A stretch of DNA of 49,646 nt from Klebsormidium nitens (Eukaryota > Plantae > Klebsormidiophyceae): positions 1-49,646 of the forward strand of contig DF237584.1 of NCBI GenBank assembly GCA_000708835.1, written 5' to 3'. Under the pieces are notes generated by a model. It searched no databases and was not told the origin of the DNA. It saw only the letters and a program-made list of their open reading frames with translations. Within the stretch, counting starts at the first letter, position 1, and the number at the start of each line of letters is the position of its first letter. Below are positions 2,040-49,646 of the stretch, piece after piece. The position numbers and the translations under genes are program-made.

Positions 2040-2433
2040 CATAGTTGCACAATACGTCAGTTTTCGAATTATCATACGCGTATTGTGCCGTATTGGTTCC
2101 AAAGATAATGATACGGCGGAAATACGGCTTAAATGCGTCAAAAATACAAAAACAGCGATTTTCAAGTTTTTTCTTGGAAAAATAATTGTAAAAGCCTCTA
2201 AAATAGCTTGTTTGACGTGACCAGGAGTTGCACGGCCTTGCAACTACCTTAACAAGCTTAATAACCAATAAACGCAAGTTGGTTAACCAGGAAAATGAAT
2301 CAAAAAGAGGAAAAAGCCAAAAAGCATGCGACGCATTTTTGAGGTATTTTAAATGGCCAATTCTTTAATACGTCAAAATTCGCGTATTTCCCTTCGCCGT
2401 AATGATACGCGTATCACGTATCGTGCAACCATG
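2040..2433. mobile_element. hAT-type non-autonomous element (MITE), 394 bp
   Basis: 17-bp TIRs: CATAGTTGCACAATACG (2040-2056) versus the reverse complement of 2417-2433, CATGGTTGCACGATACG (15/17 match). Exact 8-bp TSD ACTTGTGC at 2032-2039 and 2434-2441. AT-rich interior with ATACGCGTAT/CCGTAT subterminal motifs. Removing the element and one TSD restores the frame ANVAQ-VLVSMVLV. Confidence 0.85.
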
Positions 2434-4358: not shown

Positions 4359-4954
4359 NNNNNNNNNNNNNNNNNNNNNNNNNNNNNNNNNNNNNNNNNN
4401 NNNNNNNNNNNNNNNNNNNNNNNNNNNNNNNNNNNNNNNNNNNNNNNNNNNNNNNNNNNNNNNNNNNNNNNNNNNNNNNNNNNNNNNNNNNNNNNNNNNN
4501 NNNNNNNNNNNNNNNNNNNNNNNNNNNNNNNNNNNNNNNNNNNNNNNNNNNNNNNNNNNNNNNNNNNNNNNNNNNNNNNNNNNNNNNNNNNNNNNNNNNN
4601 NNNNNNNNNNNNNNNNNNNNNNNNNNNNNNNNNNNNNNNNNNNNNNNNNNNNNNNNNNNNNNNNNNNNNNNNNNNNNNNNNNNNNNNNNNNNNNNNNNNN
4701 NNNNNNNNNNNNNNNNNNNNNNNNNNNNNNNNNNNNNNNNNNNNNNNNNNNNNNNNNNNNNNNNNNNNNNNNNNNNNNNNNNNNNNNNNNNNNNNNNNNN
4801 NNNNNNNNNNNNNNNNNNNNNNNNNNNNNNNNNNNNNNNNNNNNNNNNNNNNNNNNNNNNNNNNNNNNNNNNNNNNNNNNNNNNNNNNNNNNNNNNNNNN
4901 NNNNNNNNNNNNNNNNNNNNNNNNNNNNNNNNNNNNNNNNNNNNNNNNNNNNNN
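4359..4954. other. Assembly gap (596 N) inside an intron of the CRN-like gene
   Basis: Run of n. All ORFs in the track that span it are artefacts. Confidence 0.99.
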
Positions 4955-15129: not shown

Positions 15130-15449
15130 GGCAGAGCAAGACGGTCTCTCTCATATACCAATGCTTTGTAATCAAATTAGAGCTATTACATGTATGTAAT
15201 CCGTACAGTCAAACAAGGCTCAGAGTTCAAGTTTACAGTGATCGTATATATATAAGGATGTGCATGCACATTCGATCGCCGATCGTCTCTGGCAGAGCAA
15301 GACGGTCCCTCTTATATACCAATGCTTTGTAATCAAAAGTTAGAGCTATTACATGTATGTAATCCGTATATACAGTCAAACAAGGCTCAGTTCAACTTTA
15401 CAGTGATCGTATATATATAAGGATGTGCAGTCGATCGCCGATGTCTGGC
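15130..15449 (+). repeat. Near-identical 161-bp tandem duplication between the convergent TraB and DTD 3' ends
   Basis: Units 15130-15290 and 15291-15449 both begin GGCAGAGCAAGACGGTC and share ATACCAATGCTTTGTAATCAAA and CAGTGATCGTATATATATAAGGATGTGCA. Confidence 0.95.
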
Positions 15450-15974
15450 ATGATGCAAGCCGCGGCGCGCCTATAGAGGGCGCAGGGGGCTCAGCAGCAA
15501 TCAAATCAGTCTGATTTTGTGATCAGAGATCTGTAGAATTCTTTTTCACGGTGGTGGTAAGTATACATGTGCTTGCGATGATAAACGCGTATACATGCAA
15601 AAGTACATCGCGCGGAATCCAAGCCGCAAAAGCCCAGTCGACTGAGTACCATTTCAACCATTTGCGCAAACAATCAAAGGGCTGACGCTTGGCACGCCAA
15701 GTGTACGTCGGTAAGGCAGACTAAACGGCACAGAACTGGCTAGGTATTTTGCCGATGTCTGACCACCTTATACAGTCCAAGAGAGGGATGTGACTCTCCG
15801 TCTCCAATTTGTGTCACCGCGTGCTGTATCGAGTGCCTTGCAATGAAGCCTTTGAATCAAGATGGGCCCCTTCCATTGTACTTTCGTGCGTGCAACGTGT
15901 TCAACAGAGATTCGGGGTCTCTTTCCCTGAAAGAAGCGCGCCTATCGTACATCAGAACATTTCAATTGCCTGGC

Positions 15975-28900: not shown

Positions 28901-31900
28901 GCCTTCAATTTGTCGCCCAACGGACGGAGCAGAACGGCCCTCTTACATCTTGTTGGTCCTGGTTAATGCCCATTGTGTTCATCCTATTCAGTCATGCTTG
29001 CCATCCTTGTCTGCAGCAGCACCTTCTCCTCGACTCGGCCAGCTCGAACTTTCTTGCAAGCAATTGCCTGCTTTTAATCTGCTCTGAGAAAAATGCAACC
29101 TTTTCATTGAGAAGCCAGCCCCGTCCAAACGTCTCCAGGTTGGACGCCCCAAACACGACGCCGGACGCCATCCGGACGCATTCTACTTTGCAGCAGCATC
29201 TCTACCTGAACTTGACCAACTTGAACTTGCTTGTAAGCATCCACCCCATTCTTACCTGCTCAAAAAGCAGCACATCAGCCGAATCAAGCCCCCTCCGACG
29301 CCTGCAGATTGGACGCGCCAAACACGACGCCGGACGCCATTCGGACGCAGCAGCTGATGGCGACCATGGTGGAGAAGGACGTGTCCGCGTGCGTCATGGA
29401 GGTGTCGTCGCACGCGCTGCAACTAGGGCGGGTCAAGGAGGTCGACTTCAACGTAGCGGTACGTACCTCCGGCTTCGGTCTCCTAGTTCGAGCGCTACTT
29501 TATTCTGCTGCACTGAGCGCCAGTCAGTGTGCTTGCAAGTGTCGAACAGAAGGAGGCCGTGAAACTCCTTCGGTTCCTGTGCAACAGTCACTCTAATCGT
29601 GGTCTGTAGTCATTGTAGTGCCACAGCAAAGTCGGTGTGTCTGACGCTTGACGGGCGGACTCTGGATGTTTCTCCTTGGAATGCACCTTGAACGAGGGTC
29701 CGTCGAGCAGTGATGATCTGTCTTTGCTTATCAAGCATTGAGCAACCAGAAGCAACCCGAGTCCGGAATCCAGTTTAAAATTCTCTACGTCCCCCCAACA
29801 CTGTGAACCCGTGATTGAGGAGCTTGTTGTTGGAGGGCCAAGAACCAAACCTGAGGCTTTCTCTTGGCTGCAGGTGTTTACTAACCTGACGGAAGACCAC
29901 CGAGACTTCCACGGGAACATGGACAACTACCGGGAGGCCAAGGGCAAGCTGTTTGCGAAAATGACGGATCCGGAGTGGCATCGAAAGGTAAGGCCATTGA
30001 CTCTTTTTAGTAAAGAGTCATTTCGGAGCTTCGGCACGTTCGACGCTGGCCGTGTCGCGGCAACGTCCGCTGACAGTGAATCCTACCTGCAAGATGCATA
30101 GGTCGCGGCAGCTCTTATCAGGATACATGACGTCAACCCTATTGATTCTACTGGTTGGGATGCGCGATTCGACTCCTCTTTCTTGCTGTTCTGATTTTCG
30201 AAGTTCCTTGATGGCGGTTTAGCAAGTGGGTGGGTCCCACTCAAGACCTTTGAACTTTGTAGCCAAAGTGGGTGCCTCTCGAGGCCTTCGGATTTTGGAG
30301 TCAGGACTCTGGATCCAAGCAGCTAACGGTCCCGGCAACTCTTGCCGGGACGGCTTCCCTCACTGGTCACAGGAAGGCTCTGTTGTTTCAATTAAAGTCA
30401 CTGAAAACAAAACGCTTTCTTTTTTGCTGCAGGTGGTTAACATAGATGATCCGAACGCGCAGTGGTTCATCAGCCAAGGAAACCCGGTAAGCTTCTCTTG
30501 CGTACGGAGTCTGCTTCAGTGCGATCGAAAGCCGACCCTTGCGTGCTGAGCTCATCCAAAAAAGATTTCGTTGTTGGCGTGGCAGCTTGGTCACCCCTGC
30601 TTTGCATTCTTGGACGCATTCTGCTGTCAGTTGTTGCCAGACCTTCATCCTGGGTGAGTCTTGAGTTTTTGTCTCATTTTGCGTGAAAAGGCTTCGTCAG
30701 AAGCGGTTCAATGTTCGCATTCTCCTTCAAATGGACTGAGGAGGAAGTAGACTTTGATCTGACTCGAAGCCTTCTGCCTCGTTATCTGCCACTCAAGATT
30801 CGTGCTAATAAGTCGCTGACTTCGACTTCGCTGCCGTTGAGCGTTGCAGAGACTCCTTTCTCGAGCGCACTCTCAACTCGTATCATAATCCGTCGTCATT
30901 TTGCCCTCCCTGCTCAGTCTGCTTTCTGACTCAACGCTTTTTCCAAGCAGTGTCCAAGGAAGTTCTACCGGAAAAGCCACACGCAGGTGGACATTGACGC
31001 ATGATCCCATTGTCCTGGATCTGGCAAGCACTGCATCCTGCTTAGAATTGTTCCTGATTCGCTGCTTGATTTCCTTTTGCAGGACGTTCCTGTCATCACG
31101 TTCGCCTTGGAGGACGAGTCCGCCGACGTCTACCCGCTGAACGTGGTGCTGTCGCTCTTCGAGACCGAGCTGGAGATCCGGACGCCGTACGGCAACCTGC
31201 AGATCTCAAGCGGGCTCCTAGGTAAGCTCACAGACCGCAGGAAAGTCGGTTCCGGATGGAAATGCTTTTGAGTGGATCAGATGCAAGGGACGAAAAGGTC
31301 GTTTGATCCAGTGTCATCCTGCGCCGGCCTTGGCGTACCCGTGCTTGAGACGAAAATGGACTGCTTACGACTCCGATCGTGCACAGGCATTGACCATGCC
31401 TAAAACATTTCTTTAAGCCGGCGTTTGAGGTGGCTTCTGGCATGCTGCCAAACTGCATATCAAGTCAGGTCTTCCTTTCCATCACTCTCGCCTTTTCGAG
31501 TTTTGGCTCACATGCCCTATGAGAAGATTCGTTCCTGGAGCCAGTGCCTCTTGGGAGTTTTGAACCCTCTTCCGAACCATTTTCCAAGTTGTGTTCGTCC
31601 ATTGGACGGCGACCAGTCTGCACCGCTCCGCCGCACCAGGTCGCCACAACTTCTACAGCGTGATGGCCACCGTCGCCGTCAGGTTGGCCATCGGTGCACC
31701 GTTTGACGCTCTCGAATTGTGAATCCCTTCGTTGAAAGGCGACCAATTCCCCCGTTTTCTCGTACCAGGTCGCCACAACATCTACAACGTGATGGCCGCC
31801 ATTTCCGTTGGATCGGCCATTGGCGCGTCGCTGGATGCCATATGAAATCATCTTTTCAAGTCGCAAAGTCCTACGACGTATCGTGATTGGCGACCAATAC

Positions 31901-34900
31901 GCCCCGCTTTCTGTTATCAGGTCGCCACAACATCTACAACGTGATGGCCGCCATCGCCGTCGGATTGGCCATCAGCGCACCGCTCGACGCCCTTTTGCTC
32001 TCATCACCAGCAAGTTCACACCCTTAAACCCCCTAACGTTCGTTGGACGGCGACCAATCTGCCCCGCTTTCTTGTGCCAGGTCGCCACAACATCTACAAC
32101 GTGATGGCCGCTATCGCCGTCGGGCTGGCCATCGGCGCACCGCTCGAAGCGATTGTGAAGGGCGTCGAGGAAGTGGACAACGTGCCCGGGCGGATGGAGC
32201 TGATTGACGAGGGGCAGCCGTTCGGTGTGATTGTGGACTACGCGCACACGCCGGACGCGTTGGAGCGGCTGTTGGATACGGTGCGGGAGTGCGGGCCAAA
32301 CAGGCTGATCACCGGTGAGCATCTCGAAGATCTGGATTCCTAAACTACTGTATCATATTTAGGAGCAGGTGTTTGAGAGCGTTGGTGGATTATGCTCCAA
32401 ACCAAACACTAAAATCACCTCCTATTCAGAAATTATGCTCATTTGCCAGACGCGCTCGAGCAGTTGTTGGGTACGGCGCGGGCTTGCGGGCAAACGGGCT
32501 GGTAACGGGTGAGCATGTCGAGGTTCTTAGAGTTGGATAAGTTCCTAGTTCTGAAACTTCTAGGAATTGTTCATTCAGGAGCGATTTCGAACTTCCAGGG
32601 TTCTCGCGGACGATTGACGCCTTTTTGTTGTGCTAGTCTGAGCTGGTAGGTTCGGTGTAGCGATGCGGAGAGCTTCAGCTTCAGTGATCTCGAGCATTTC
32701 CTTCGTGCGTTTTGGAGATTCAAAAGCTTTGTACGCCTGCGGTTTGGGGTTGCAAGAGCAACTAACTTTCAAGGGCGCTGAATCATTGTGTGCTGAACCA
32801 AGGGCAAGTTGTAGCGTTCTGACCCCTAATATACGCATGAGAACCAAAGGGAGCCGTTTGGAAGGTGTTGTTTAACGAAGCAATGGGTTTCGAAATCAAA
32901 GACACCCAAGTTTTCTCTTTCCTCTGAGGCCATCCAGATCAGTACTTTCAATCCAATCAGTTGCCCTTGACACTTGAATTGGGCCACCGCCCTAAGATGG
33001 AGCGCGTTATGGGCAAAGCTCACGGTTTGGCGTTTCTTGGCAGTCCTTGGCTGCGGGGGCGACCGCGACCGACAAAAGCGGCCGGTGATGGGGAAGATCG
33101 CGACGGACAAGAGCGAGGTGACCATCTTCACGTCGGACAACCCGCGGTCGGAGCACCCATGTGAGCCGCCAGAACCCATCTTTGTGAATAATCTCCGCTT
33201 GAGCGAGGTGTTTTTTTTTCCAGATTGAAGCACCTTATCGGTTTGTGGATGTTGCGCTTAAGGTGTCTGCGTCTACAGAGCGATTTCCAGATAGATTGAT
33301 GTCTCGAGTTACAACACCTGCGCAAGAATTTTCTAGACTTTGACATGGTCAGTCATTGAAACAACTATTTGTGGCCCATCAAGCTTTGTTGTTCAGAGTT
33401 GAACGCAACGACCCCTGGTTCGATTGAACTCCGGCCGTTAACCAAATCATGGCCATCATTTCAGACCGACATAGCGACCCCTGACCGCCGGCAGACCAGA
33501 TTATGGGGGACGTACTTACTAGAGATACCAATCCTTGATATGTCTGCCCCTGCCCGCAGACCGAATCCTGGAGGAAAGTTCAAGGGCTTCGGCTGAGAGT
33601 TAGACGACTACTTAACCTTCGAATCAGAGAAGGTCTGTCCAAGCCATTTTCCTCAGCTTTAACATAACGACCTCTAATGACCTCTGATTGCCGTTGCCCT
33701 GCCCGCAGACCAAATCCTGGACGACATGTTTAAGGGCGTCGGTTGGGAGCTGAACGAATACTTGACTTTCAGGTCGGAAAAGGACTGTTCGATTGTTTGT
33801 CTTCAGAATTTATTATGATGGCCCTAAGATTTTTGCTCCCGCCTGCAGACCAAATTCTGGACGACATGTTTAAGGGCGTCGGCTGGGAACTGGACGACGA
33901 CTAAACCTTTGGTTCGGAGAAGGTCTATCCTTGCCTTCTGCTTCAGAGTTTGGTTTAGGGACCCCTGATCTGTTCCGCTCTCCATGCAGACCAAATTCTA
34001 GACGACATGTTCAAGGGCGTCGGCTGGGAGCTGGACGACTACCTGACCTTCGGCTCGGAGAACGACTTCTACCCGCAGCTCGGCAACGGACACCGCCTCT
34101 TTGCATATGACCACCGGGCAGTCGCGGTGCGATCTGCTATCGCCATGGCCCAAGAAGGGGACTGCGTCGTGAGTACTCTCCAAACCGCTTCTCTCTCAAG
34201 GGGCACACCCTTTGTTTCGGGATCCGTCGGCGACCAGAGAGTGCAGATTCTACCTCATTGGTCGCTGAAGCGGAATTCTTAGATGCAATCTAGACCGTCG
34301 GAACAGAAAAGTGTTTCAGGACGCAAATACCTGTTCATACGACCACCGGGCAGCTGCGTTGCGGTCGGCGATCGCTATGGCTCAGGAAGGGGACTGCATC
34401 GTGAGTGCTCTCTATAGAGCATGATGAGGTGGTGTCTCATCGAATTCTGCTACAATGAAGTACCGCAGAACAGCCACACTCCTGGACGCCACCGTGAATC
34501 GGTGGCAATGAAAGGACGCCAGAAGTCTGCTGCAAGTCTGCTTGAGAACCTGTCATTTGATTGCGAGCATGGTCAGCAAACTTGATCTCATCTGGGTGCG
34601 GATCGAAGTAGCTGTCCGCTTCGCGTCCCTGAACCTGGGGTGGAGGAGCTAAATGACCAAGATGCGCTCAGACCAAGGTCGGAAACACCTTATCTCACAA
34701 GAGATCTGCTGCGCTTCAAAGACCACTCCTCTCAACGTTCTCCTCTGCAGCGCTCCAAAAGCGAGCTCGCAGCGCCCCCCAAAGGAACCCCTCGAAACTC
34801 TTCCTATTCAAGAGCGAATTTACAATGAATCAGTGACGACGGATGCTGCTCTTTTTCACGGATCGTGGCGGGCAAGGGGCTCAAGACGTGCCAGATTGTT

Positions 34901-35238
34901 CGCGGGGAGCGCTACTATGAAGTTTCATGCCTGCCTTTAGAGTCCCTTCGCTTCTCCTAACTAAGAGCCTGCTATTCCTTCTTCTTCCATGAAGAATCTA
35001 AACTTCTTTGCAACAGATTGTGGCGGGCAAGGGGCACGAGACGTACCAGATCATCGGCGAGGAGCGCAAGTACTTCGACGACCGGGAGCACTGCCGCGAG
35101 GCGCTGGAGCGGTTGGACCTGCTGCGGACGTCCGGGATCGACAGCAGCGAACTGCCCTGGCGGACGGAGTACGGCGAATCCTGGGAAGACGAGGATGAGG
35201 ACATTCCCAAGCACGACTCGGCAGATATCGCCATGTAG
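19946..35238 (+). CDS. murE: Plastid UDP-N-acetylmuramoyl-L-alanyl-D-glutamate--2,6-diaminopimelate ligase (plant-type MurE), ~844 aa, 17 exons
   Basis: Exons 19946-20260, 21253-21559, 22202-22461 (weak GTATCC donor), 22868-22918, 23303-23350, 23916-23984, 24435-24528, 25053-25161, 28814-28885, 29308-29458, 29874-29987, 30433-30486, 31083-31221, 32081-32314, 33044-33160, 33990-34168, 35017-35238. Phases are consistent; total 2535 nt. Motifs: [83 protein letters not shown]. Plant-type C-terminus [10 protein letters not shown] and a long acidic N-terminal extension. Confidence 0.96.
20470..21122 (+). repeat. Diverged ~339-bp tandem duplication in MurE intron 1
   Basis: 20470-20790 and 20809-21122 share e.g. 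GGTACACCACCCA.ACATCGGATCCATCATAC, GTAAAGACCTCTGGATATT, GAAACCAAAGATCCAT and GCCGCCTATTTGAGGGTC. Confidence 0.9.
31603..32000 (+). repeat. Three degenerate tandem copies of the intron 13/exon 14 junction of MurE
   Basis: CAG|GTCGCCACAAC(A/T)TCTAC... acceptor copies start at 31640, 31769 and 31921; the real exon starts at 32081. Confidence 0.92.
33545..33930 (+). repeat. Three degenerate tandem copies of the intron 15/exon 16 junction of MurE
   Basis: GCAG|ACC(A/G)AAT(C/T)CTGGA... copies start at 33560, 33709 and 33849; the real exon starts at 33990 (period 140-149 bp). Confidence 0.92.
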
Positions 35239-37020
35239 TGACGGAGCGTGAGCATCGAGTGATAGAAAGATAATGACGTAGTGCTGGCATCACTGCCCTT
35301 GGATAGTGAAAAGTACCGGCGAGTGCTGGGAAGAAGAGGATGAAGACATCCCAAAGCATGACCCCACCTATATAGCCATATGAACGACACAAGATCAAGA
35401 AACTTCGCCAGCAGCTATGAGCTGCCTGGTCCTGATTCCATGCCAAAAGGCAGTAGAAAGAAACATAGCCGTTGGAGAGAGCAGTGAGACAGTAACGGGG
35501 CGCCAGAAAAGAAGATAGAGATTCAGTCATCCCTGGGGCCGAGACGTTTTACTCTTGCTCTTATACTTCAGAAGGTCTCTCCTTCGCAACATTCCTTCAC
35601 AAGACTGGCGTGTCAGTCTTCTTTGTGCTTGCGTTGCTTCCAAGGATCCCCTTCCCTTCGTTATAAACTATGCTTAAATCTTGGTTTTGTCAAAAAGGCC
35701 ACTGAAGAGCCGGCGCCCGCGCCCGGCTGTGGCTTTGGCTTCCAAGCGTCGGGTCCCGATTGAGCGCTATGGACTTTGGCAGCCTCTGCAACATTCACTT
35801 GACACCAGTTGTGGCGCACAACTTTTTCACATCGACGAAGGAAGTTGATCCAAGACGGGGTGCAGCTTTCCGAGGTTGTCAGTCCACGAGCTGAGTGGCG
35901 GATGATTGTTTCCAGTGCAACTTCGCAAGGGCCTCGCCATCTTTCTCCGGTAAATCTGTGCCTGTTTATTGAGCGAAACTAGGATTGTCTCTGCACTTGC
36001 TGTTCAGCCCAGCATCATGTGGTGTCCATCAAAAATTCAGCGTCCCTTGTGGAAAGAGCTCGAGTCTTGCCGGTGGCAACAACTTTCGAACGTAGAGCAG
36101 CAAGGACGAGACTCTGAGGGCATTGGGTTCAGACAGGAAGCCAGCGCCTGACCGCCTCTACAAAGGCCGATGCTGCTGATTATGCTTTTGTCATAACTGT
36201 GCACACTTGAATTTCCGGCCACGTCTGGGTCCCCCGATCCCCCTTGCACTCATGGCGACACGTAACTAAGAAAGAGTCGGATAAGAGCATCTGATGCCCA
36301 TAAGTGTTGACCGCTTTTGTAGACAGAAGTAGGCTAGACGTCCGTAATCATCACCGCTTTCGTTAGAAGTTGTCCAAAGTTTTTGCTCTGGAGCTGTCGA
36401 GCAGAGGATGTCAGCGTTTCATTCTCACGCCTTGAAAAGATCACTGTTCATTGGTTGAGTCGAGAATGAAGCGAGCAGGACGGACGCAACGTGGCACCCT
36501 TGAGGTGCGTTAGAATGCACGGATTGGCAAGCTGCAAAGCTCTTTGATGATCGAGGTGCTGACGCCGTTTAGCGGTTGACACGGCTGGTTTGGGTTTGGA
36601 CTAACTTTCCCCGCGCTTGATACGCAAACCACTTTACTTGAAGCACCAAACGGCTCTTTTGTATTCTAGTTGATTCCGAATCTTTCACCTTTCCGAAGCG
36701 GTTCCGTACAAGTGACCAACTCAATCCTATGTTAAGTGACAGCTTCTTAAGTAAAGGTTTCGACAATGGATGCGGAAGTTTTGGGGCGCATTATTGCTTG
36801 GACCCTCTGTGTGAAATCGTTTGTAGCTAGCCTAGATCATTGGAAAGCGCATGCGCTTGAGTCCATCTGAAGTTCGAGGCCTGGTAGCTTGAACCTGTTA
36901 TTTGACGGCCGACAGGGATGTTATGCTAGAAACTCGCATGTGATGCGACCCACAAACTTTTTGCTCACCGAATGGGAGCCTAGCAGTGTTCTTGGTATTC
37001 ACCATCTTAGTCGCTCTCGT

Positions 37021-37089
37021 AGCAGCCATGATGCCCCAGTAAATGGCAACGTGTGCCAGTCCAGGTCACGTCGATCTAGGGCTGACGCT
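37021..37089 (+). ncRNA. Candidate C/D-box (K-turn) RNA module A1
   Basis: ATGATG 37028-33 and CTGA 37082-85; GCCC/GGGC stem inside the boxes; TGGCA-ACGTG-TGCCA hairpin; AGC/GCT outer stem. Expression unknown. Confidence 0.4.
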
Positions 37090-38177
37090 ACTTCCGTGCC
37101 CGCTCTGTCGGACGTTTAGGACAGCACGTGAGCGTAAGGCTCGTGGTATCACTTAAGCCAGCGCTCGTGCTTGTCCTCCTCAAACCAGGCGGGACGACAA
37201 AGAATCTCCCGTAACTAGAGGTGGAGGGTAGAGGCCCGGCCCGCCGCTTCTGAAAGCGGGGTTGGGCCCCTGAGGAAACTTACGTTTGCCAGTGTGTTGA
37301 ATAGAGAGTTGTCTTCGGAGTCACTGCGGAGGAGACTCGTTCTAGTCCTTGAATAGCAAGTAGATACTTGTTGCAAGTCCACAAGATGATGCTGCTCCTG
37401 CCCACCTTGGTTTCGTGTGCTCTAGCTGATATCTTTCTTTGCAGCTCCCAACAAAACTTGGCAAGTAGGGCTCGAAAGGGGTTGTCCAACCGGAGACCAG
37501 CTTTGGCAGCGGCTCCGTTCTCGATCTGTGGACGTAGTCGTTTAGCCGTTTCCCATGTATCCGCATCTGCCAGGACGTCTAGAGAGATTTGAAGGGCAAG
37601 CTATGATGCAAGATTCTGGTACCTTGTGCCAGAGTACATCTTGGTTTGATGCTGTTCTAAGTGCTTGCAAAAGGCCGCAACTTAAATCTACTCTCGGAAT
37701 AGTATACGAGGCCTGACGGCTAGCGGGTTTCTTAGAGTTGCTCCCGCATACGGCGTCACTTCTCTAATCGGCAGCAGTTCGGTCAACAGGTCCCTTTGTC
37801 ACACCAGCGAGAATACTAAGATGACGATTGACGTCTGCGACATGACCACTAACAGTTCCAAGAACGACGCTGTTCACTGCACCTTTTCCAAAGTCGTCCG
37901 TATCTCCTCGGTGCACTTTCAGGAAGGTCTTCAAAGACCTCACGCGATATAAGCGTTTTCAATTTTACATCCACAGATTGTGCGTTCTTAAATAAGAAGC
38001 CATGCGAAGGAAATATCATGCGCACGCGTCCAGTTGAGCCTGATGCAGGGTGGTCAACCGTCCTAGCTAGGACCTGACTGAATGATTCTTTTCTTACTAA
38101 TTGATTTGCCCAGCTGTGATCAGAAGTTGGACGGTTCGACCTTCTACACGTCAGCATCTCCTCGTTTTCTGTTGTAG

Positions 38178-38244
38178 GAGCCGTGATGCCCGTGGAAAGC
38201 GACGCATGCCATTGGATCTGACCCGAAGTTTGGGCTGACGCTGT
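38178..38244 (+). ncRNA. Candidate C/D-box (K-turn) RNA module A2
   Basis: GTGATG 38183-88 and CTGA 38235-38; GCCC/GGGC stem. Confidence 0.4.
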
Positions 38245-39046
38245 GAATCTGTGCTCACTCGTACGGACGCATAAACACATCAAGGGCGAAACATTTGGGT
38301 TATCACTTTAGATAGCGCTAGCTAGTGCTTGTGCGTCTCACCCTGAGCAGAGTGGCAAAGTGCTCTTTGCGACAAACGACGAAAGTTAGAGGGTTAGGCC
38401 CCGCCCCTCGTCAAGCGGTCTTGGCCCGTTGAGTTTGCCCGTTCGCAGCTAATGAGATAAGAGACCTGTCGTCAGATCACTTACGTCGTGAAACTGGTGT
38501 TCTTATAGTTTTATTTCGGTCTAGCTTAGCCTACCACCATATCTGGCCACTGTTGTGTGCATCCTGAGTTGAGCTGAATCTGTGCAGTTGATTAGTTGGG
38601 TTAATTGCACCCTTCCAATTTATCTTGGTTTAGTGCACTTGACAGGTCTCTCATTTGCAGTGTTCCTGATAGGCACAAAAGAGCTCTCAAAAGTAAGGCT
38701 TGACCGAATTCAGCTTCAGAGCGGCTTCTTGTTTTGAATACGACTGCAACCCTCTCCTAGCTGTATCTTCTGTCAAACTCTTCAATTGCCAACGGGAAGC
38801 TGTAAAGCTGCGCGGTGGTCGCTTGTGCCTCTCGCCCTTCTCAGAGCATATGTTTTTGAACTGTTGTAGAACCCCGCGACTGAAAACGATAGAATTCGTG
38901 TGGCTCAACTAAACTGGCCGAGAGACATTACCATTTTGCGTATCCGGAGAGACCCTTTGTTGGCTAGCGGTTGCAAATGGCTTCCGCATCGCGCCGCCGC
39001 AACTTTGATGGCGGCAGTATCTGTTCAACGGGTCCCTTTCTGTACC

Positions 39047-39125
39047 GACAGCAAGGATGAGTAACGTGTGGCATCCGAAGAGCCCAAGCCACACATTCGT
39101 AGTGCGCAGCAAAGATGAAGCTGTC
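39047..39125 (+). ncRNA. Candidate C/D-like module B2
   Basis: ACAGC-AAG-GATGA (39055-60) ... ATGA (39115-18)-AGCTGT; internal GTGTGGC/GCCACAC 7-bp stem. Confidence 0.35.
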
Positions 39126-39872
39126 CGTCCATACAAAGAATTGAACCTGGTTCGAGTGCACCTCCTGGTCCACCGCTTTGGTCGCTCATCCCGAACTCGT
39201 CTCTTTTTAAGGCTCAACCAAAAAGGGGCGTTCAGTCGTTGTTAGGCTCAGAACCACGAAACTCTACCAGCTCATAAATGAATATGAATCGTCCTGCAGC
39301 AGATCGTGCGGGTTGGAAGCAAGTGCTGACGTCGCTTCTCCGGAGGAATCTTGGAGGCCTTGTCAGTTCCTCTCTCGAAAGGCGTCTGAGGCGTGCCCCC
39401 TCTAGTTGATTCCATCAGTCAGCGGCCCACCGGGCCGATTGTTTTCCGTCAACCATTGCAACCGTGAAGGAAAGTGAGTGATTTGGGTTTCTTATTGTGT
39501 TATCGTTTGAGCTTGGCGTGCATTGAATCCGCAGCTAGGAGGACCCACTTGTATTCTAGACGTTGCCCACTCTAGAGGGGTACTGGTGAGTCCTGATGCT
39601 GCGGCTTCGTGCATCCTCAAACCAGCGCCCACAGTCAAAGAAGTTGCTCTCCGATTGCCTGAACGAATAAGACACGTTCTCACAGCCAACCTTGATCTCC
39701 TGGGTCGTTCTGTCAGAGGTCTTCAATAGAAACACATCATCGAAAACCATACACACTCCTGAAAATGAATTCTAGCGTACCGGATTCTTGCGCAAGCTTC
39801 CACTCGAAGCCTTATGCACTTAGCTTCGAGCTTTCGGTGGTTCGTTTCAGTACTTCGTTATCTTTTTAACGA

Positions 39873-39944
39873 AGCAGCCGTGATGTCAAGGTGACTGGCA
39901 ATCTCCGCCAGGCTTCCTTCACCAAGACCTGGGGCTGACGCTGT
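39873..39944 (+). ncRNA. Candidate C/D-box (K-turn) RNA module A3
   Basis: GTGATG 39880-85 and CTGA 39935-38; nested GGTGA/TCACC and CTGGC/GCCAG stems. Confidence 0.4.
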
Positions 39945-40961
39945 GGATGTGCCCGCTCGGATAGAGATCTCAGGACAGCAAGTGAGCGAACGGCACATAC
40001 ATCTTTCCATTGAGAAAGCGAGGTATGTATTTCTAAGCTAACACACAGAGCGCCCGAGCCAAACGTCGTCTAAATTGATCGACGTTGCTCTCTGCTTTTT
40101 GCATGGAATCTGCATGATTTTTGAGGGCATCTCCGAGACACGCGCTGACTCCTAGTAAGCCAATCAACCTTTTCACAAGATACTCCATTGTGGCTTCGTC
40201 CTACGGTCAGCTTCAGATCCACGAATTCCAAATTCTGTTAAAGTCACCAATCACAACTTGCGGCAAACTATGCTGCTTGATAAATGCCACCACAAATCCT
40301 ACAACAGAATGCGCGGAGCCTTGACGTTTCCACTTTCGAGTGTTCTGGTCTGAGGCGCGGCTTCTCTAGTAGATCCCGTCCCGCGAGGCCATCGGGCTAA
40401 TCAAAAGCCCGTCAACCCAGCGATTTCAGAGGAGGGAAGGAAAGTAGGCCAATTGGGCTTCATTTGTTCGTTTTGAGCCTGATTTTGGCCGGATCGATAT
40501 CAGGACCTGCTCAGAGTCTGCCAGTGACGGTGACCATTTGACATCAAGTTACGGGCAAGCTCAAATGTGGCTGCTTTGTGCAACCCAGGCTGATTACCTT
40601 GCATTGGGAGAAGTTGCTTCTCGACGTACTGCCACCACGAATCAGGCACGTTCCCAAGAGCTAACCAGGATCTTCTCGGTTGATTTTGCATGGAAGAGCC
40701 GTCTGTAGACTCACGCCTGCGAAAATGAAACAGAGATCGCAATCGCTGAAAGATAGGTTGAACTCATTGATTAATAGCGCATGAGGGTCCCCCCGAACTA
40801 GCCCCGCGCATAGATTTCACCTCTCACACGACGTCGATGATCTAGGACTTGGAGTGCGGGATAGGGTGTGGGAATAGGACATTCCCACTGATCTGCAAAT
40901 GGCACGTGTTGTTGGTATTTCACAGCAGCATTAATATTTCTCTGTTGTCGTCGTACTATAA

Positions 40962-41032
40962 AGCCGTGATGCCCAGTGACCGGCAACGTTAAGTTGCCAT
41001 TCCACCTCGCGATGGTTTGGAGCTGACGCTGT
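40962..41032 (+). ncRNA. Candidate C/D-box (K-turn) RNA module A4
   Basis: GTGATG 40966-71 and CTGA 41023-26; GGCAAC/GTTGCC hairpin. Confidence 0.4.
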
Positions 41033-41271
41033 TTTTAAATGTGCTCGCTCCGGTGAAAGTGCGGAAGCTTGAAACAGCCAGTGAGTGCGCGATGGGCAAG
41101 TCATCCAGACTTGGCGGCCAGCAACCGCGCGTTGTATTTTCTATTTTTCTCATTTTCCATGAGCATATGGAGGCCTGCCAGCTAACGGGCCTCTAGGAAT
41201 TGCTTCCGCTTAATGTCAGCAACTCAGATGCTCGTCGCAATTGTTGTCAAAAGGACGTTGCTTGATTGCTA

Positions 41272-41341
41272 ACAGCAAGGATGAGTATCTGTTGGCAACG
41301 ACAAAAGGGCCAAAAGCCATGGTATGCCAAAATGACGCTGT
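41272..41341 (+). ncRNA. Candidate C/D-like module B3
   Basis: ACAGC-AAG-GATGA (41279-84) ... ATGA (41332-35)-CGCTGT; TTGGCA/TGCCAA stem. Confidence 0.35.
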
Positions 41342-44300
41342 GCATATGTTGAATTTGTTGATGTGTGTGTCTGCGGAAGTGCAGCGCCCGGTTCGTGGGC
41401 ACGTCCTTATATTTTCACGCTCTTGCTACCAAGCCTAATCTCGTCGAATGTCGAGACTAGCAGTATTTTTGGTGTTCACCATCTTAGTCCCTATCGTACT
41501 AGCCATGATGCCCCGTGAATGGCACAGTGTGCCAGTCCAGGTCACACCTGAAAGGGTTGACGCTATTCCCGTGCCCGCTCAGTAGGACGTTTCAGGACAG
41601 CACGTCAGCGTAAAGCACGTGTAATGTGTCAATCAGCGCTCGTGCTTTTGCTTCCCAGGGCTCTAAAAGAGGTAGTACAAACCGAGATCAGCTTCGGCAG
41701 TGGCTTCGTTTTCAATTCATGGACGTAGTCGTTTAGCCCATGTATCTGCATCTGCCGGAACCTAGCTAGGTAGCTTTGACGGGCAAGCTGTGACGCAACA
41801 TACTGGTCCCTCGTGCCATTGAAGTTTTCGAGCTGATGCTGTTCAAGTGCTTGCAAACGGCTGCAACTGGAAATGTACTTTTTGTTTTTTTAGTTCCGCA
41901 ACAACACACGAAGCCTGACGGCTAGCGGGCCTCGTAGAGTTGCTTCCGCATCGCAGCAGCTTCTTCAAGCGGCAGCAGTTTCTGTCACCAAGTCCCTTTG
42001 TCACAATAGCGAGAATACTCAGATTGCGTTTGACATCCGCCACATGTCCGCCGAAAATATCATCGAGGGTGACGCTGTCCAGCTTTTTGTTTGCACCTTT
42101 CATGACAATTCCGCTGTAAGAATAGATTGGTTGCCAAAAGATCAGAACAAGTTTTCCACAGCTGGCTCTATCTCCTCAGTGGGCGTTCAGGAAAGTCATC
42201 CAAAACTTTCACATCAACAGAACGCGGTACAGCTTTGCCTTTCTTAAATAGGCAGAAAGGCAAAGTTCATTCGCATAAGTCCATTGAGCCTGATGCAGGA
42301 TGGTCAACAATCCCAGGCCTACGAACTGACTGATTGCACCTTTTCTAACTGAATCGCCGACGTCTGGAATTCGTTCTGACGTCCTAAATCAGCATTTCCC
42401 CGTTTGCTGTCGTCGAAGCCGTGATGCCCGTGAGAAGCGGCTTATGCCATTGATCCTGATGTTTCAAAATCTGTGGCTCGCTGTAAATTCACCTGCCCAC
42501 TCGCACTCAACGGTTCAAAATACCAAGTGGGCGACACGCATGTGTCAATTGTTTAGCTAGAGCTCGTGCTTGCGCTTCTCACCCCGATCAGCAGGACGGC
42601 AGACAGCATTTTGCTATGAGCGACGAAGTTTTGAGAGTGTTTGGCCCCGCCCCTCGTCAGGCGATCATAGGCCCACGCACCTTGCCTGTCCGCAATTTTG
42701 TAAACACATGCTGTCTTCAGAATCCTTCCGTCATCAATCAGTTTTCCGGTCTTCACCAACCAGCTTATCTAGCCACAGTTGTGTCCATGATCTGATTTCA
42801 CCATTCAGCTTACCTCGTTGTCAGCGCTCTTGACATGTCTCTCGTTTGCAGTGGTCCTGACACACAAAACGCGCTTGCAGAATGTGAGCTTGACCGGACC
42901 CAGCTTCAGCAGCGGCTTCTTGTGTCTCGATATGACGGCATCTTTCGCCTTGTTGGTGATATCTTTCAGACTTCTAATGAGACGACGGGCAGCTGTGATG
43001 CCACAAGGTGGCCGTTTGTGCAGGCCTCTCGTCTTTTCTCCAACAGATGTTTGCAAACTTGCAAAGTGCTTGCAGAAGGCCGCGATTGAAACCCTTAAAT
43101 TGCGTACATCCGAAGGACCCTTTTTTCACTTGCTGGCCTCTGAATACCTTCCGTATCACGTCGCCGCAACTTTCATGATGGCAGTATCTGTTCAAAAGGT
43201 CGCTTTTTTTCCCGACAGCAAGGATGAGTAACGTGTGGCATCCGAAGGGCCCGAGCCACACACATTTGTAGTGCTCAGCAAAGATGAAGCTGTCCGTCGA
43301 TACATATATCTGCACCGAGTTCGACGGCACCTCCCGGTTCACTGCTCTGGTCGCTTATCCCAATCCTGTCTCGTTTCAAGGCCCAATCACAGGGGGCGTT
43401 CGATCGTTCTTAGGGTCAAAACCACGAATATCCTCCAACTCACGACTGACAAATTGTCTTGCAGCAGATCATGCGGGTTGGAAGCCAGTGCTGACGTTGA
43501 TTCTTCGACTTCTTGGAGTCCCCTTTCTAAAGTTCGAGGCGCGGCCGTCTAATTGATCCCTTCTGTCTCCGCGTGCCCACCGGGCTGATTGGATTCCGTC
43601 AATCCTTTGCGAATTGTACGTGAGCGGGATTGAGTGACTTGTGTTTCTTCTGTGTTCCTACTAGTAGTCAAGCTTGGCGGTGCTTTAGTTCCGTAGCTAT
43701 GAGGATCCGCTTGACTCTAGACAATGCCCAATCTAGAGTGGTATTCGTAGACCTAATGCTGCGGCTTCCTGCATCCTTAAACCAGTACCCACAGTCAAAG
43801 GAAACGAATACCAAAACGAGTCAGATACGTCCTCAGAGCCAGAACTGATTTCATGGGTCATTTAATTTGTAAAAGGGTCTTTAGTATAATGATTACAAAA
43901 GCGAAAATTCCTTACACAGGAATCCCAATCCTGAAAGAATTGTCAGCGTATCACTTTTATACGCAGGGTTTGACTCAAAGCCTCACGCATAGTCAGAACT
44001 TTGATCTGAGCCGATACGTTTAAAAAGTGCACGAGAGCCGTCCTGGTCCACCCTCACTCCTTTGCTGATCATATTCGTGCTTTCGGCGATCTGAATATCT
44101 CTCCTTGTCTTTTGACGTAGCAGCCGTGATGCTGACACTCTGGCAACCTCTGCCAGTTTCGTTCACTAGGACTTGGGGCTGCCGCTGTGTATCTGTCCGC
44201 TGGGATGTGGTTTAAGCACAGCAAGTGAGCCGAAGGCACGTGTGATCACTCTGGTCCGCGCTCGTGCGTGTGCTTGTCAAATCAAGCGGAAAGAGCCTTC

Positions 44301-44364
44301 TGTATCTAGTGGTGGCTGCTAATAGAGGACCCTGACGGCGCTTCTGAAAGCTCGTTTTCCAACG

Positions 44365-44429
44365 TAGCAGCCGTGATGCCCATTGACTGGCAACGTGTGC
44401 CATTCGGGGACCAATTTGGCGCTGACGCT
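44365..44429 (+). ncRNA. Candidate C/D-box (K-turn) RNA module A8
   Basis: GTGATG 44373-78 and CTGA 44422-25; TTG/CAA and TGGCA/TGCCA stems. Confidence 0.4.
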
Positions 44430-45150
44430 CTACTGTGCCGGCTTGGCTGAAAGGCACGTGTCACGAATTTATGCTTCGCTCGTTTTGGGGCTTGCCAACC
44501 CAAATGGGACGTCAAAAAGCCGTTTGTAACTAGAGGCGGAGGTCAGATGGCCGGGCCCGCCGCTTTGAAAACGAGCTTTGAAGTTTCTTGGCCTATAAGG
44601 GAACTGACCGTACCGTTGCCACCTTGTAAAAAGTCAGGCTTTGTCGTCGGATCGCTTACGCGCCAAACATGTTTCTCTTCTCTTTTGAGCTTCTGCATGG
44701 CCCGCCCGCGTATGCAGCCAGATTGCGTCCATAAGCTGGTGCTGTTCCTGTGCATGCGCACCTCAGTTTTAAGTTTTCCTTTCGCAATCTGCGATAAGCA
44801 GAGCTCTCGAAAGTTGAGGCCAGACCTGAACCAATTTCAGCAGAGCCTTCTGTTCGCATACGAATGCAATTCTTGCATCCATGTATCGGCGTCTGCGAAG
44901 AATCAAAGGTGGTTCATGGGCAGCTGTGATGCCAGGATCTGGCCACTAGGGCCACCAATCGTCCGGTGTATGCAAGCTGCCGCTGCTTGGGTGTTTGCAA
45001 AAGGCCGCAACTGGATATTATGGTTTGCGTTTCTTAGTTTCTCATGACAGTAATTCAGAGCCTGTTGGCTGGCTGGCCCACGCGATTGGCCCCCGCTTAC
45101 GTCGGCTATTTCAAACAGCAGTAGGTGTAGATGACGGGTTGCATAGCCGA

Positions 45151-45219
45151 AACAGCGAGGATGGACAACATTTGGCATCCTCAAAGTGCCACTTATTGGT
45201 CCGGAAGAATGACGCTGTT
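45151..45219 (+). ncRNA. Candidate C/D-like module B6
   Basis: Perfect 7-bp terminal stem AACAGCG/CGCTGTT; GGATGG 45159-64 and ATGA 45209-12; TGGCA/TGCCA inner stem. Confidence 0.35.
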
Positions 45220-45965
45220 CATTTGTTCCATCCGCACCCTCGGTTCGCACCCAGTTCACAAGCTTCGTCAAACCTGACCGAGTGCCTTTTCACGAGGCGT
45301 TCATTCGAAAAGTCCATTTTCTGTCAAGCAAGCTCCGACTCCACTTTACCCACGTGCTCATCAGGCCAAACATGTCTTCAGGCGAGGGTTGCCGCGGCTT
45401 GAAAGGCAGTGCTACCGTGACTCCTTCGGAAGAAATCTCGGAGGTTGTGTCAGTCCTTCTCGAGGAGGATTTTGATGCCAGGCACCTCTTTTCAATCCCC
45501 TCTGTTCGTACGGTAAAAATAAGCTAAATTTATACCACATTAAAAGGGGCATGGGCGATCTGGGTTCCTTTCGTACATCTATCCGCTAGGTTTCCTTCTA
45601 ACGTCTGTAGCTATGAGGACTCGTTGTGAATCGAGACGTTGTCTAGTCTTGAGGCACTGTGGGACGCTTCTGATGCTGCTACTTTATGTGTTCCTGCATC
45701 GCCACTGTTGTTCCATCAAGTTGTTTACTAAGTGCCACGAAAACACGCTCTTGAAAGCACGCTCTTGAAACCTAGTCTTGATCTTCACTTCTTCCTTTTC
45801 GAAAGTCGCTCCCATCAAAATATCAACGAACGCTATGCAGCAGACAACTGCGACGCCGTAAGCGAAGCCAACCACACGAATGTTTGATGCACAGAAGTCC
45901 ACCCAAAGTCCGGCGCAGAGCTTCACACACGAGCTTTCCTTATCACCCATTCCTCGTTCTTCGAC

Positions 45966-46040
45966 GCAAGAGCAGTGATGCCCAATGGGCCGGCAAAATT
46001 TGCCAATGTAGTTAGCAGTGACTCGAGGCTGACGCTTTGC
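45966..46040 (+). ncRNA. Candidate C/D-box (K-turn) RNA module A9
   Basis: GTGATG 45975-80 and CTGA 46029-32; GGCA/TGCC hairpin; extended outer stem GCAAGAGC/GCTTTGC. Confidence 0.4.
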
Positions 46041-47815
46041 AATGGCCCGCTCGGATGCATGGCTGGGAACTAGGACTGCGAGTGAACCAGAAGCACGTAT
46101 TAAAAATTTCATCAGCTCTCGTGCTTTAGCTTGCGAACCCGATCTAGAAAGCCTCGACCAGAAAGAAGAAGCCTTTTGTAACTAGAGGCGGAGGTCCGAG
46201 GGCTTGCCTGCAGCCTGCCCTGCTTCGAAAAGCTCGGCGTTGGAGAGAAGTTACCTGCAATGAGGTCGTCGTTGTGTTCACTGAGCTTTTGGCATGCCAG
46301 CAATTCAAACGAGGCTTCAAGATGAGACTTCTAAATCGGCCCATACCCGTTCTGACTAGCGTGCCGAACGAGCCCAAGGCCGGGTTACAATGGTGCTTGG
46401 CCGCTGGTTTCACTGCTTCCAGTTTGTTCGTTTCGTCCTGAGATATGTATATACCTCTTCCCCGTCCACTTCTGATTGCATCAATGCCTGCAGACTTGTG
46501 AATTTCGCCAAATTTGCCGTTGAAAACCGGGTTGCGATGGCTTTGAGCATTATCTCTGTTACCTTATTCGGTCCCTGCGTAACAATGATAAGCTAGTAGT
46601 AGAGTGCTCTAGACCAGTCTCTCGTTTTCTGTTTTAATGACGAATATTGCTCTTGAGAGGTAGGGCAGATCCGATCGGCTGTTCCTTGTCTCACGTCCGA
46701 CTGTGACCTCGAGTCCATGATTTCGTCTGCGAGATCTTTGGAAGACGTAACTTTCGCGCAGCTGTGATGCCGAGGGCTGGTCGCTTGTGCGAGTGGTGGT
46801 CTCTCCCTGTAAACAACCATCAATGATGCTGTTTCAATGCTTGAAGATATTAAAAGAAGACGGCAAACGGAAATCCAATTCCCCTATAACTTTTTGTGGG
46901 CTTAGAAGGCCTGTTGGCTAGCGGGCCTCAGAGAGTTGCTTCGCCGCTTTTTCAGGTCGTACCAGTGTTTGCCAGGAGGTTTTCTTTGCATAAGAGCGAG
47001 GAGTGAGCAAAGTTAGGCATCTCCATTGACCCAATAAGCGTAATGTGGTGACGCTGTTCATCGACTCGTCCGAGTGCAAGGCCCGTTCACGCTCAATGAT
47101 CGATATCGCTCGACGTCCCAGCTAGCAACATGTGGAAATAGCTTGATTGGGCGTCTCGCCTCCGTGTTTGCTCGGCTTCCGATTCACGACTTCGAATTTG
47201 GATAGAGTCACAAACCCTCTGACGCGGATACTATCGAGGATGCGTGGAGGCCGCCTTCTCGTTTTTCCTTTCAAATTGTCTCTGAGGGGCCTCTTGTAGA
47301 TCCGTGGCTAAATCGAGTCGCACCATCCCTGTCAGTTTCGCGGAAATCGTGGCGATTAGAACTTCGCTGGTTCACTTTAATATTTGGAGTTCGGCTTTGC
47401 TTCGACATAGCTAGGATATGTCAGTGTGTCGGCCACTCGGGAGCGCTTTAAACCGGTTCGTCTGATGCTGCTCATTTGCGCATACTAGAACAATATCAAG
47501 CTTCAACAAAGCTGCTTCTTGACTGCCCGAAAAAGCTAGCCATGATCTTCTCGGTTGATCTTGGCAAGGTCGTCAGTAGACTCACGTTCAAAAGCACCAA
47601 ACAGAAAACACAGCTACTCTCGAAAAGCAAACGGATGATCCCGACCGTATGCATTGCACGAGTCCACCTAAAGCGTCCGCGTATCTTGAACGTTACAAGA
47701 CGACAACTCTCAGGACTGAAACGCGATAGTATTGTTATTTTCTTCGCTCTCTACGTAACAGATTGCGTTTCTGTTGCGACATCAGCCACGCCTTCGTCTT
47801 TTTTGTGCATAGTAC

Positions 47816-47889
47816 GTAGCCATGATGCCCGGTAACCGGCAACGTGTGCCATTTACGGTTGTCCAACTGGGGATCTAAGGCTGACGCTG
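47816..47889 (+). ncRNA. Candidate C/D-box (K-turn) RNA module A10
   Basis: ATGATG 47822-27 and CTGA 47881-84; GTAA/TTAC and GGCA/TGCC stems. Confidence 0.4.
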
Positions 47890-49190
47890 CTAGTGTGTAC
47901 AAGCCCGCTCGGAAGCATATGGACGTTTCAGGAAATGCGCAAACTAAAAAGTGCGTGCAGTTTAACCAGCAATCGTGCGTGTGCTTTCCAACCACGGAAA
48001 GCACACGCACGAGCGGACGAGAGAAAAATCGTTGCAACATCAGAAGGGGCCTAGTGAAAAGGGCAATAAGCCCGCTCCTACGAGAAACTTTGGCACTGGG
48101 CTGAATCAGCAAACAGACAGATCACTAACATCAAATCTGTTTCTTCTTGAGGTCGAGCTCTTGGAATGCCAGTGCATAGGGCAAGCTTTCATGAAGCTGT
48201 ACTAGCGTTGCGGACATTAGTGCCGCTTCGCGCACGGAACCAATGAGAGGCCCGGTTCCGCAAGCTTGGAAGCAAGAGTCGCTGCCTTGTTTGGTTTTTG
48301 TATCTTCGGAGGCGAAGGACGACGTCGTTGTCGCTCCATCTGATGGTGAAAACTGGAATCGAACGAGTGGCTTTACCAAGACTTGAGATGGGCGATGAGA
48401 GATCGTATCGTGGAAAGTCAAAGAAGAAGAATGTCCCTGCAATCACCAAAACTTGACGTGCATAATCTTCTACAAGACTCGCCCAAACTATGCGCATATT
48501 TCGGGATCATCGGGCGACAAACGTAGATTTGCGTTAGGTTTGTGGTGAAGCTCGCAGATACGGAGCAGCATGCATTTCTGAGAGTTTCGGGGCAGGTAGG
48601 TTATCGGGAGGTGATTGGGCAGCATCGGCTGCCCGTTTCCTTATTGGGCTGCCAGCTGGGCTACAGTCTCTCGAGAGAGGAACGATCCTGATCAATGGAG
48701 CGTTCTTGATTCTGCGTGACAGAACTTTGATTAGGAAGACGTGGCCTTTATGCGTTGGCTGCCTCTTGTGCGGTTTCCCCGATTTGAAGCATGTGAGAAA
48801 TCAGTCAATGACAACTCTCTGTCACCAAGAGCTTAAGAGGTGTAAGACCCGACTAGTCTTTCAGATGGGACTTATGTTAGGAAAGCCCGATTTCCGGCTA
48901 TCTTCAACACCCGTACTGCTCCAGCTGGTCTTAATCGGACAGCAAGGATTGCAAAGTTTTGGCACAATATTCGAAGATCAGCCATCGCTGCTGCCACCGT
49001 ACGTACTTGATTGCTGTTCCGGAGTACCTTGGTCTGAGGGCTCTCGATGAAACTTTTTGCGGATCCCAGCACAAGCAGAGCTCTGGATAGGTAGGCCAGA
49101 CCTGATCAACGATAGCAGAAATTGTTTTTGTACGCGACTAACACCCCCGAGCTTATTTTGGTTTCTGCCAAATATAAGAAAAGTCAGCGG

Positions 49191-49263
49191 GCAGCTGTGA
49201 TGCCGGGCAATCTGGTCGCTCGTGCCAGTACTTGTTGTTATTGGCGCTCAAAGCTGACGCTGT
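49191..49263 (+). ncRNA. Candidate C/D-box (K-turn) RNA module A'6
   Basis: GTGATG 49197-202 and CTGA 49254-57; CAGC/GCTG outer stem; GGGC/GCTC inner pairing. Confidence 0.35.
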
Positions 49264-49646
49264 TCGAGTGCTTGTCCCAAGTGCAATCTCTCGCAGAAGG
49301 CCACAACTGGGAACGTATCTGTCATGTTCTATGGTGATTGATCATAGAGAGGCCTTGTCGGCTGTCGAGTCACTAAGCGTCGTTATCGCATCACGTCGGA
49401 ATTTTGCAAGTGGGCCATAGCGGTTAACCAATTGCTCCATCACATAGCGAGGATGAGAAAATTTCGGGGCATCCTTGAAATTAGGCGTCATCCCTGATCT
49501 TGACTAATGGTATCAAGGTTACACTGTTGTTCCTTCAATTTGCACTCGGTTCGAGGTATCTCTCAATTTACCCTGGAAATATACGTCCCATTTCCGACTA
49601 TTGTGAGAAAGCTTTTTCATGCGGGGCGTCCAGTCTTAGCTTTGTT

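Follow-up and report, generated by a model that had tools for sequence, protein, structure and literature searches.

The murE-like gene of the alga Klebsormidium nitens is followed by a long series of short modules, all in one orientation, whose ends resemble box C/D kink-turns. What are these modules, and which parts of them does selection maintain? We analysed a 49,646-nt stretch of contig DF237584.1 (the window). A preliminary description of its sequence had proposed an amplified family of non-canonical C/D-like RNAs or a multivalent kink-turn scaffold RNA.

Module array and murE gene

The spliced murE-like Mur ligase gene lies at 24432-35238 on the forward strand, with the Pfam domains Mur_ligase_M and Mur_ligase_C on separate exons and with exon matches to its relatives; the exons were examined individually. 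More 5' exons probably lie upstream of 24432, and murE is likely the host or upstream transcription unit of the modules. Its GT..AG intron of 3652 nt (25162-28813) contains five modules on the same strand (25476-25549, 26459-26531, 27579-27642, 27982-28056, and 28487-28560). The downstream array (36095-49525) comprises 31 modules in 13.4 kb and runs close to the window edge. It begins ~860 nt 3' of the murE stop codon with a B-like module (36095-36178), which was detected at E 8e-5 by a model that did not have this module in its training set. All modules, whether intronic or 3' of the gene, are on the murE sense strand.

The building block of the array is a 1.7-1.9 kb unit with module types A, A', B, and C, whose cores are 55-80 nt long. 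Type A (n = 10; 37024-37089, 38179-38242, 39876-39942, 40962-41030, 41501-41564, 42417-42482, 44122-44186, 44369-44429, 45971-46036, and 47818-47888) has RUGAUG with CUGA in most copies, and C-G pairs lengthen its stem II. Type A' has seven cores (37599-37653, 38798-38854, which is degenerate, 41786-41840, 42991-43051, 44922-44984, 46760-46830, and 49193-49261). The nine type B cores (37806-37871, 39050-39122, 41274-41339, 42008-42076, 43217-43291, 45154-45216, 46995-47055, 48941-49015, and 49446-49525) are, among the array types, the most like the intronic modules of related algae in form. Type C (n = 4; 39533-39600, 43695-43760, 45609-45677, and 47409-47469) is new in this analysis and scores weakly with both covariance models. 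The preliminary description was accurate at every site that it listed, since the motif was present at 26 of 26; its list was incomplete, lacking the four type C copies, the degenerate A' copy at 38798, the module at 36099, and the five modules of the murE intron. For the 5' motif AGC-N-R-TGA-Y-G we counted 16 occurrences in the array; elsewhere it was present once on the plus strand and twice on the minus strand. The full three-part pattern gave four matches, compared with none in 100 shuffles.

The spacers, described earlier as strongly divergent, are related through a worn tandem duplication of the 1.7-1.9 kb unit and a later duplication at a 4.2-kb offset (37467-44240). In the latter, 37467-39990 corresponds to 41657-44240, and 36964-37182 to 41440-41657; this recent duplicate served as an internal selection test. 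Module copies multiply through local tandem duplication, and some decay.

A search of related genomes, one of the checks proposed at the outset, was productive. The corresponding murE intron in two related algae is 12.3 kb long and holds ~22 homologous modules in each, and modules were found behind murE in neither of the two. With a model trained on the array, 15-19 modules were recovered in the intron of each relative; a model trained on the introns detected copies in the array, with E values from 1e-5 to 3e-3. Two loci of other organisms obtained from a RabE-locus search (L009 and L010) were without modules, and a pattern search of viral sequences gave no match. A single metagenome pattern match (L001) was judged to be due to chance and had otherwise no similarity to the window. 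Scans for tRNAs and tandem repeats returned nothing relevant, and we found no published description of such arrays.

Selection and kink-turn features

Between the copies of the recent duplicate, boxes were 94% and hairpin arms 98% identical, compared with 77% for spacers (Fisher p 2.5e-5). It should be noted that the box columns in this test were partly defined from the tested copies; the comparison of 12 orthologue pairs is free of that problem and gave 97% for boxes versus 87% for spacers (p 8e-6). Boxes are more conserved than spacers in both comparisons. The interiors were 73% identical in the recent duplicate, and the stretch before box D, which is the methylation-guide position, was 82% identical between orthologues and differs between paralogues. 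A short GGC/GCC hairpin of 4-10 bp is kept with constant spacing to box C, starting ~9 nt after it; in three genomes, its score was each time higher than that of all 300 shuffles. In type A the hairpin spacer is nearly fixed at 5 nt, while the loop length varies widely in the other types. The base-paired interiors described previously are borne out for this hairpin but not as broad pairing (mean folding z -0.41). At the level of sequence comparison, the box ends and the hairpin are shown to be under selection while the remainder drifts.

The ends of each unit combine a 3-8 bp terminal stem, paired at 83-90%, with adjoining tandem G.A/A.G positions. Both G.A pairs are kept at the sequence level in 21/30 array copies and in 14/15 and 17/19 modules of the two relatives. 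The kink-turn is nevertheless further from the canonical form than had been proposed: the full RUGAUGA was found in none of the 30 array copies and RUGAUG in 15, the bulged U is missing from type B, and the -1 position lacks a Watson-Crick or G.U pair in types A, A', and C. Box C of the relatives reads R-D-GA-N-GA. Box D is CUGA in 12/30 array copies and 24/34 modules of the relatives, and the -1 position is paired in 6/30 and 31/34, respectively, in the relatives together with a 2-nt bulge. C'/D' boxes are poorly conserved in eukaryotes; in agreement with the preliminary description, no C'/D' pair was found here, with a loose pattern in only 7/68 modules. Binding by Snu13 requires both G.A pairs, an intact -1 pair, and a 3-nt bulge (PMC8413462).

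Covariation within types, which had also been proposed as a check, was not significant by partner-shuffle and pair-count tests, and the alignment fold contained 7 pairs only. Stem changes on the sense strand favored G.U over A.C (32 vs 16, p 0.03), and beyond G-C in stem II, intronic modules have an A-U pair where type A has C-G, which represents one subfamily-level compensatory switch. The suggested Rfam search gave no match at the gathering threshold, and resemblances to group II intron domain V, SAM-I, and twister had no Rfam support.

Candidate explanations

We give about an even chance to the modules being a Klebsormidium-lineage family of predicted orphan, non-canonical box C/D-like RNAs that was multiplied locally in tandem. 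The first of the two original proposals is partly supported in this form by the selection on the boxes and hairpin, the models that work across genomes, the G.U bias and compensatory switch in the stems, and the lack of coding or transposon signal. Against it count the non-significant covariation within types and the distance of the array copies from the Snu13-binding requirements, with RUGAUGA in none, CUGA in 12/30, and a paired -1 position in 6/30. In such a family, Pol II would transcribe the units within a longer RNA, either an intron or a read-through or non-coding host; intronic clusters and polycistronic precursors are established for snoRNAs of plants and of Chlamydomonas (PMC5122169). 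A Snu13-type protein would bind the kink-turn-like end and block exonucleases, and trimming would leave 55-80 nt RNAs, or longer RNAs with two modules as caps. In place of a C'/D' site, which the units lack, the fixed hairpin probably provides the second contact for protein. Guiding of rRNA methylation appears unlikely because the guide position is not conserved; no conserved 10-21 nt antisense element was found before box D, in line with the earlier remark that no guide was obvious. With distinctly lower probability, the modules may represent a kink-turn RNP class separate from snoRNPs. The units of such a class would combine the fixed hairpin with a kink-turn variant of the 2-nt-bulge or 3x1 form, would be bound by a specialised L7Ae-family protein, and would relocate between host introns and the DNA downstream. 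They would either make up a variable repertoire of guides or regulate host-RNA processing in a multivalent way.

Alternatively, the modules may never be released, and a long intronic or read-through RNA with many kink-turn-like sites would recruit an L7Ae-family protein, Snu13 or a different one, and serve as scaffold, sponge, or brake on host splicing or decay, as with SNORD86 and sno-lncRNAs. We regard this as possible though somewhat unlikely. It is consistent with many modules in one intron, the way sno-lncRNAs arise (PMC11028025), with selection confined to the predicted protein-binding ends, with relaxed features of full snoRNP assembly, and with the pyrimidine-rich tract and AG that precede type A copies (pyrimidine 0.73 vs 0.53). 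However, the murE intron shows a fourfold range in module number (5 vs ~22) without a visible change in the gene, and end-protected small RNAs carry terminal stems of this kind (<=8 bp). Quite improbable is a diversifying guide repertoire, in which constant protein-binding ends enclose rapidly evolving interiors that recognise mRNAs, transposon RNAs, or viral RNAs by pairing. Interiors and the stretch before box D are slightly more divergent than spacers, but neither difference is large, spacers may contain other selected sites, and antisense matches to the rest of the window were not in excess (9.8 vs 9.74 nt). It is even less probable that selection acts on DNA, either on a site for protein binding or on a very small inverted-repeat element, with an incidental RNA fold. 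In the relatives, the modules do have a short inverted repeat as their terminal stem, and the type A hairpin has its nearly constant spacer. However, every copy is on one strand, target-site duplications of 4, 8, or 9 nt were found in 0/34, the hairpin loop is very variable outside type A, and both the bias toward G.U and the conservation of the tandem G.A are consistent with single-stranded RNA. A MITE or other inverted-repeat transposon was rejected on the same absence of target-site duplication and single orientation.

Identification of the unit as a decayed protein-coding or transposon repeat would have overturned the original proposal. The coding version, with the boxes as conserved codons (AVMP, CPVTGNVC, or ADAV), draws on some wobble-like variation, acceptor-like tracts ahead of type A, and a weak lag-3 signal in old copies. 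However, the recent duplicate has no codon phase (p 0.51) and 92 indels, mostly of 1-2 nt; the relatives' intron is likewise without phase (p 0.3), whereas the exons give p <0.004. Moreover, box-to-box distances occupy all three frames, the five longest frames tested had no Pfam match, and CpG decay, seen in the sequence, explains much of the wobble. The coding reading is largely refuted, and we consider it extremely unlikely. In SECIS cores, a non-canonical R-U-G-A/G-A quartet binds an L7Ae-family domain, and the quartet is shared by the modules, whose letters can also be drawn as UGAN/NGAN. As in SECIS elements, pairing is possible between the bulged base and the additional base that follows box D, and two selenoproteins are encoded in the genome (PMC7539508). 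However, the modules lack an 11-13 bp helix II, a conserved apical AAR, and a location in a selenoprotein 3' UTR; the relatives' modules are intronic, and the translated murE exons contain no in-frame UGA. A SECIS-like identity is likewise extremely unlikely.

Relation to known systems and significance

SNORD115 and SNORD116 of mammals have mostly one copy per intron, compared with ~22 copies in one murE intron of the relatives. The mammalian arrays resemble those described here in being tandem, same-strand, and orphan box C/D-type, with birth-and-death turnover and subfamilies; however, their boxes are canonical and they possess C'/D' as well as a conserved antisense element, whereas the modules have relaxed boxes and a drifting guide position (PMC12429941). 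Plant polycistronic and Chlamydomonas intronic clusters also carry several C/D-type units per precursor, housed in a protein-coding gene's intron. However, their units have distinct guides, most with rRNA or snRNA targets, whereas the modules are paralogous to one another, match no Rfam family, and carry no conserved guide (PMC5122169). As in sno-lncRNAs, SPA lncRNAs, and SNORD86, multiple snoRNA-like ends per intron could cap longer RNAs or affect the host transcript, although those systems have been described in mammals, with two canonical snoRNAs (PMC11028025).

Large tandem orphan C/D-type arrays have been described as a mammalian innovation. If our preferred reading as box C/D-like RNAs is true, a comparable family that evolved independently in an early-diverging streptophyte alga would mean that this arrangement can arise outside mammals. 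Since selection acts on the predicted protein-binding ends only, the modules would provide a clean system for studying the function of orphan snoRNA-like RNAs without a conserved guide, and the bulge and -1 variants that occur naturally among them form a series directly usable for Snu13-binding tests.

A worn tandem array behind murE

The window is eukaryotic, with a G+C content of about 50%, and carries a spliced murE-like Mur ligase gene on the + strand (stop at 35238), separate exons of which were identified by Pfam. Behind this gene, 31 modules were found in 13.4 kb, counting type C, one degenerate A' and one copy at 36099. Every module listed in the preliminary description lay at its site, and its three types (A, A' and B) were all present; the full unit, however, has four, with type C added. 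The array arose by tandem duplication, now worn, of a unit of 1.7-1.9 kb containing the four types, and includes a later duplication at an offset of 4.2 kb. About a third of the copies have decayed, and they spread by duplication. A motif search of the window showed that the module 5' motif was restricted to the array and to a single strand, and the three-part module pattern had no occurrence in shuffled sequence. A canonical box C (GTGATGA) preceded by AGCA, with no confirmed partner box D, lies in a murE intron at 29702-29712, the sole + strand occurrence of such a 5' motif beyond the array.

The murE introns also contain decayed copies of the gene's exon edges (31589-32000, 32434-32527, 33533-33950, 34331-34412, 34850-34917 and 35312-35379). 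They share about 81% identity with the real exons, and the differences show codon phase, which would follow from continued evolution of the real exon under selection. Elsewhere, the window has an assembly gap (run of N) at about 4360-4960, open frames on the - strand at 628-2894 and 5371-5868, and two-copy tandem duplications at 15130-15475, 17163-17487, 20444-21129 and 29002-29349, with periods of 161, 165, 337 and 177 nt, respectively.

Module anatomy and departures from box C/D

In the plan common to the modules, a terminal stem with the core AGC/GCU, which reaches 8 bp in relatives, is followed by tandem G.A positions and then a G-C pair. After 8-9 bases without pairing comes a GGC/GCC hairpin, whose loop varies in length, and a tail that is also variable leads on to box D. 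The hairpin has a near-constant starting offset in all three genomes and scored higher than every shuffle. Beyond the G-C, the next stem II pair is C-G in type A, and modules in introns have A-U there; this switch is one evolutionary event, not many. On the sense strand, G.U outnumbered A.C among stem changes (32 vs 16, p 0.03). Covariation, which the preliminary description had proposed to check, did not reach significance in formal tests on the modules, because there is little variation in the paired columns.

The module ends are alike in working to box C/D ends, at the sequence level only. RUGAUGA was found in none of the 30 array copies and CUGA in 12 of 30. In all modules one additional base separates box D from the stem; it is paired, mostly A-U, in relatives, giving a 2-nt bulge, and mismatched in types A, A' and C (e.g., C.C, U.U, U.C). 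Snu13 requires both G.A pairs plus an intact -1 pair (PMC8413462); given these departures, its binding is not to be assumed. C'/D' boxes were absent from the modules, as first noted, and no Rfam family matched in the window or in one relative. Several tests of membership among box C/D methylation guides failed.

Type C modules have an inner stem of 6-7 bp (39568-39589, 43726-43748, 45631-45652), retained in copy 45609 despite changes on both arms. A second stem can be drawn directly downstream of most type A modules (37095-37145 and equivalents, e.g., 39947-39997, with wobble changes between copies) and is possibly a processing signal. At 20-30 nt upstream, type A modules have a pyrimidine-rich tract whose final AG abuts the module 5' edge, resembling a 3' splice site; the tract is milder in relatives (0.58-0.61 vs 0.52).

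Intronic modules in related algae

Orthologous loci were reached from the last murE exon in metagenome and sequencing-run assemblies. No downstream array was found behind murE in the relatives' loci, where a RabE gene in tail-to-tail orientation is found within 1-2 kb of murE (RabE/Rab8 at 1400-4100 of locus L003 and beyond 11300 in L005 and L006). RabE/Rab8 is not in the window, implying that it moved by at least 14 kb or that the locus was rearranged in this genome. In the relatives, one murE intron of 12.3 kb is packed with modules; a search of related genomes was among the checks first proposed. Trained on the array alone, a model found 15 and 19 modules in two relatives' introns, all on the murE sense strand, and an intron-trained model found about 22 per relative and also recovered array copies outside its training set, the E-values of both being rough. 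The equivalent intron in the window has 3652 nt and five modules. In both relatives, a truncated module (5' half only) was seen directly upstream of an intact one (13250-13318, reverse strand of L007).

In the recent duplicate pair of the array, identity was 94% in boxes, 98% in hairpin arms, 73% in interiors and 77% in spacers. Since this test is partly circular, outside sequences were sought. Between the two relatives, identity was 97% in boxes, 87% in spacers, 86% in interiors and 82% in the 12 nt preceding box D. The module ends and hairpin are under selection; a guide is not conserved.

Module B41274 of the array is 67% identical over 93 nt to the final module in a relative's intron, and B39050 has an upstream flank in common with another. 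A rough tree placed A and A' with intronic module 27583 of the window itself and put B and C in separate groups; we claim no donor, because the tree has few columns, a long branch and no root. Most simply, some of the intronic cluster would have been duplicated to a place behind murE in this lineage and amplified there, with most of the copies in the intron being lost. The reverse order, with downstream copies first and intronic ones later, may apply instead.

Competing readings of the modules

Because module motifs are readable as codons, the coding reading was tested first. The recent duplicate pair had 92 indels, mostly of 1-2 nt, and showed no codon phase (p 0.51), distances between boxes spread over all three frames, and a Pfam search of the longest open frames gave no match. 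Old array copies showed a codon-phase signal that is weak at most, in pairs that are non-independent, and the relatives' module-bearing intron showed no codon phase, whereas exons did. A decayed protein-coding repeat, named beforehand as refuting the RNA interpretation, is thus rejected. DNA-level, coding and SECIS readings are unlikely even when taken jointly. A variable guide repertoire, for which the diverged interiors would be the guides, is also improbable.

The modules have about an even chance of being released as orphan RNAs: they would be transcribed by Pol II, bound by a Snu13-type protein, and trimmed to small RNAs or module-capped RNAs. Action in cis within a long RNA is a less likely possibility. 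A literature search covering few subscription papers turned up no description of such arrays for Klebsormidium or any other streptophyte alga. The modules lie on the sense strand in or behind a host gene and multiply by duplication, and from their sequences we would class them as a variant of orphan C/D-like arrays.
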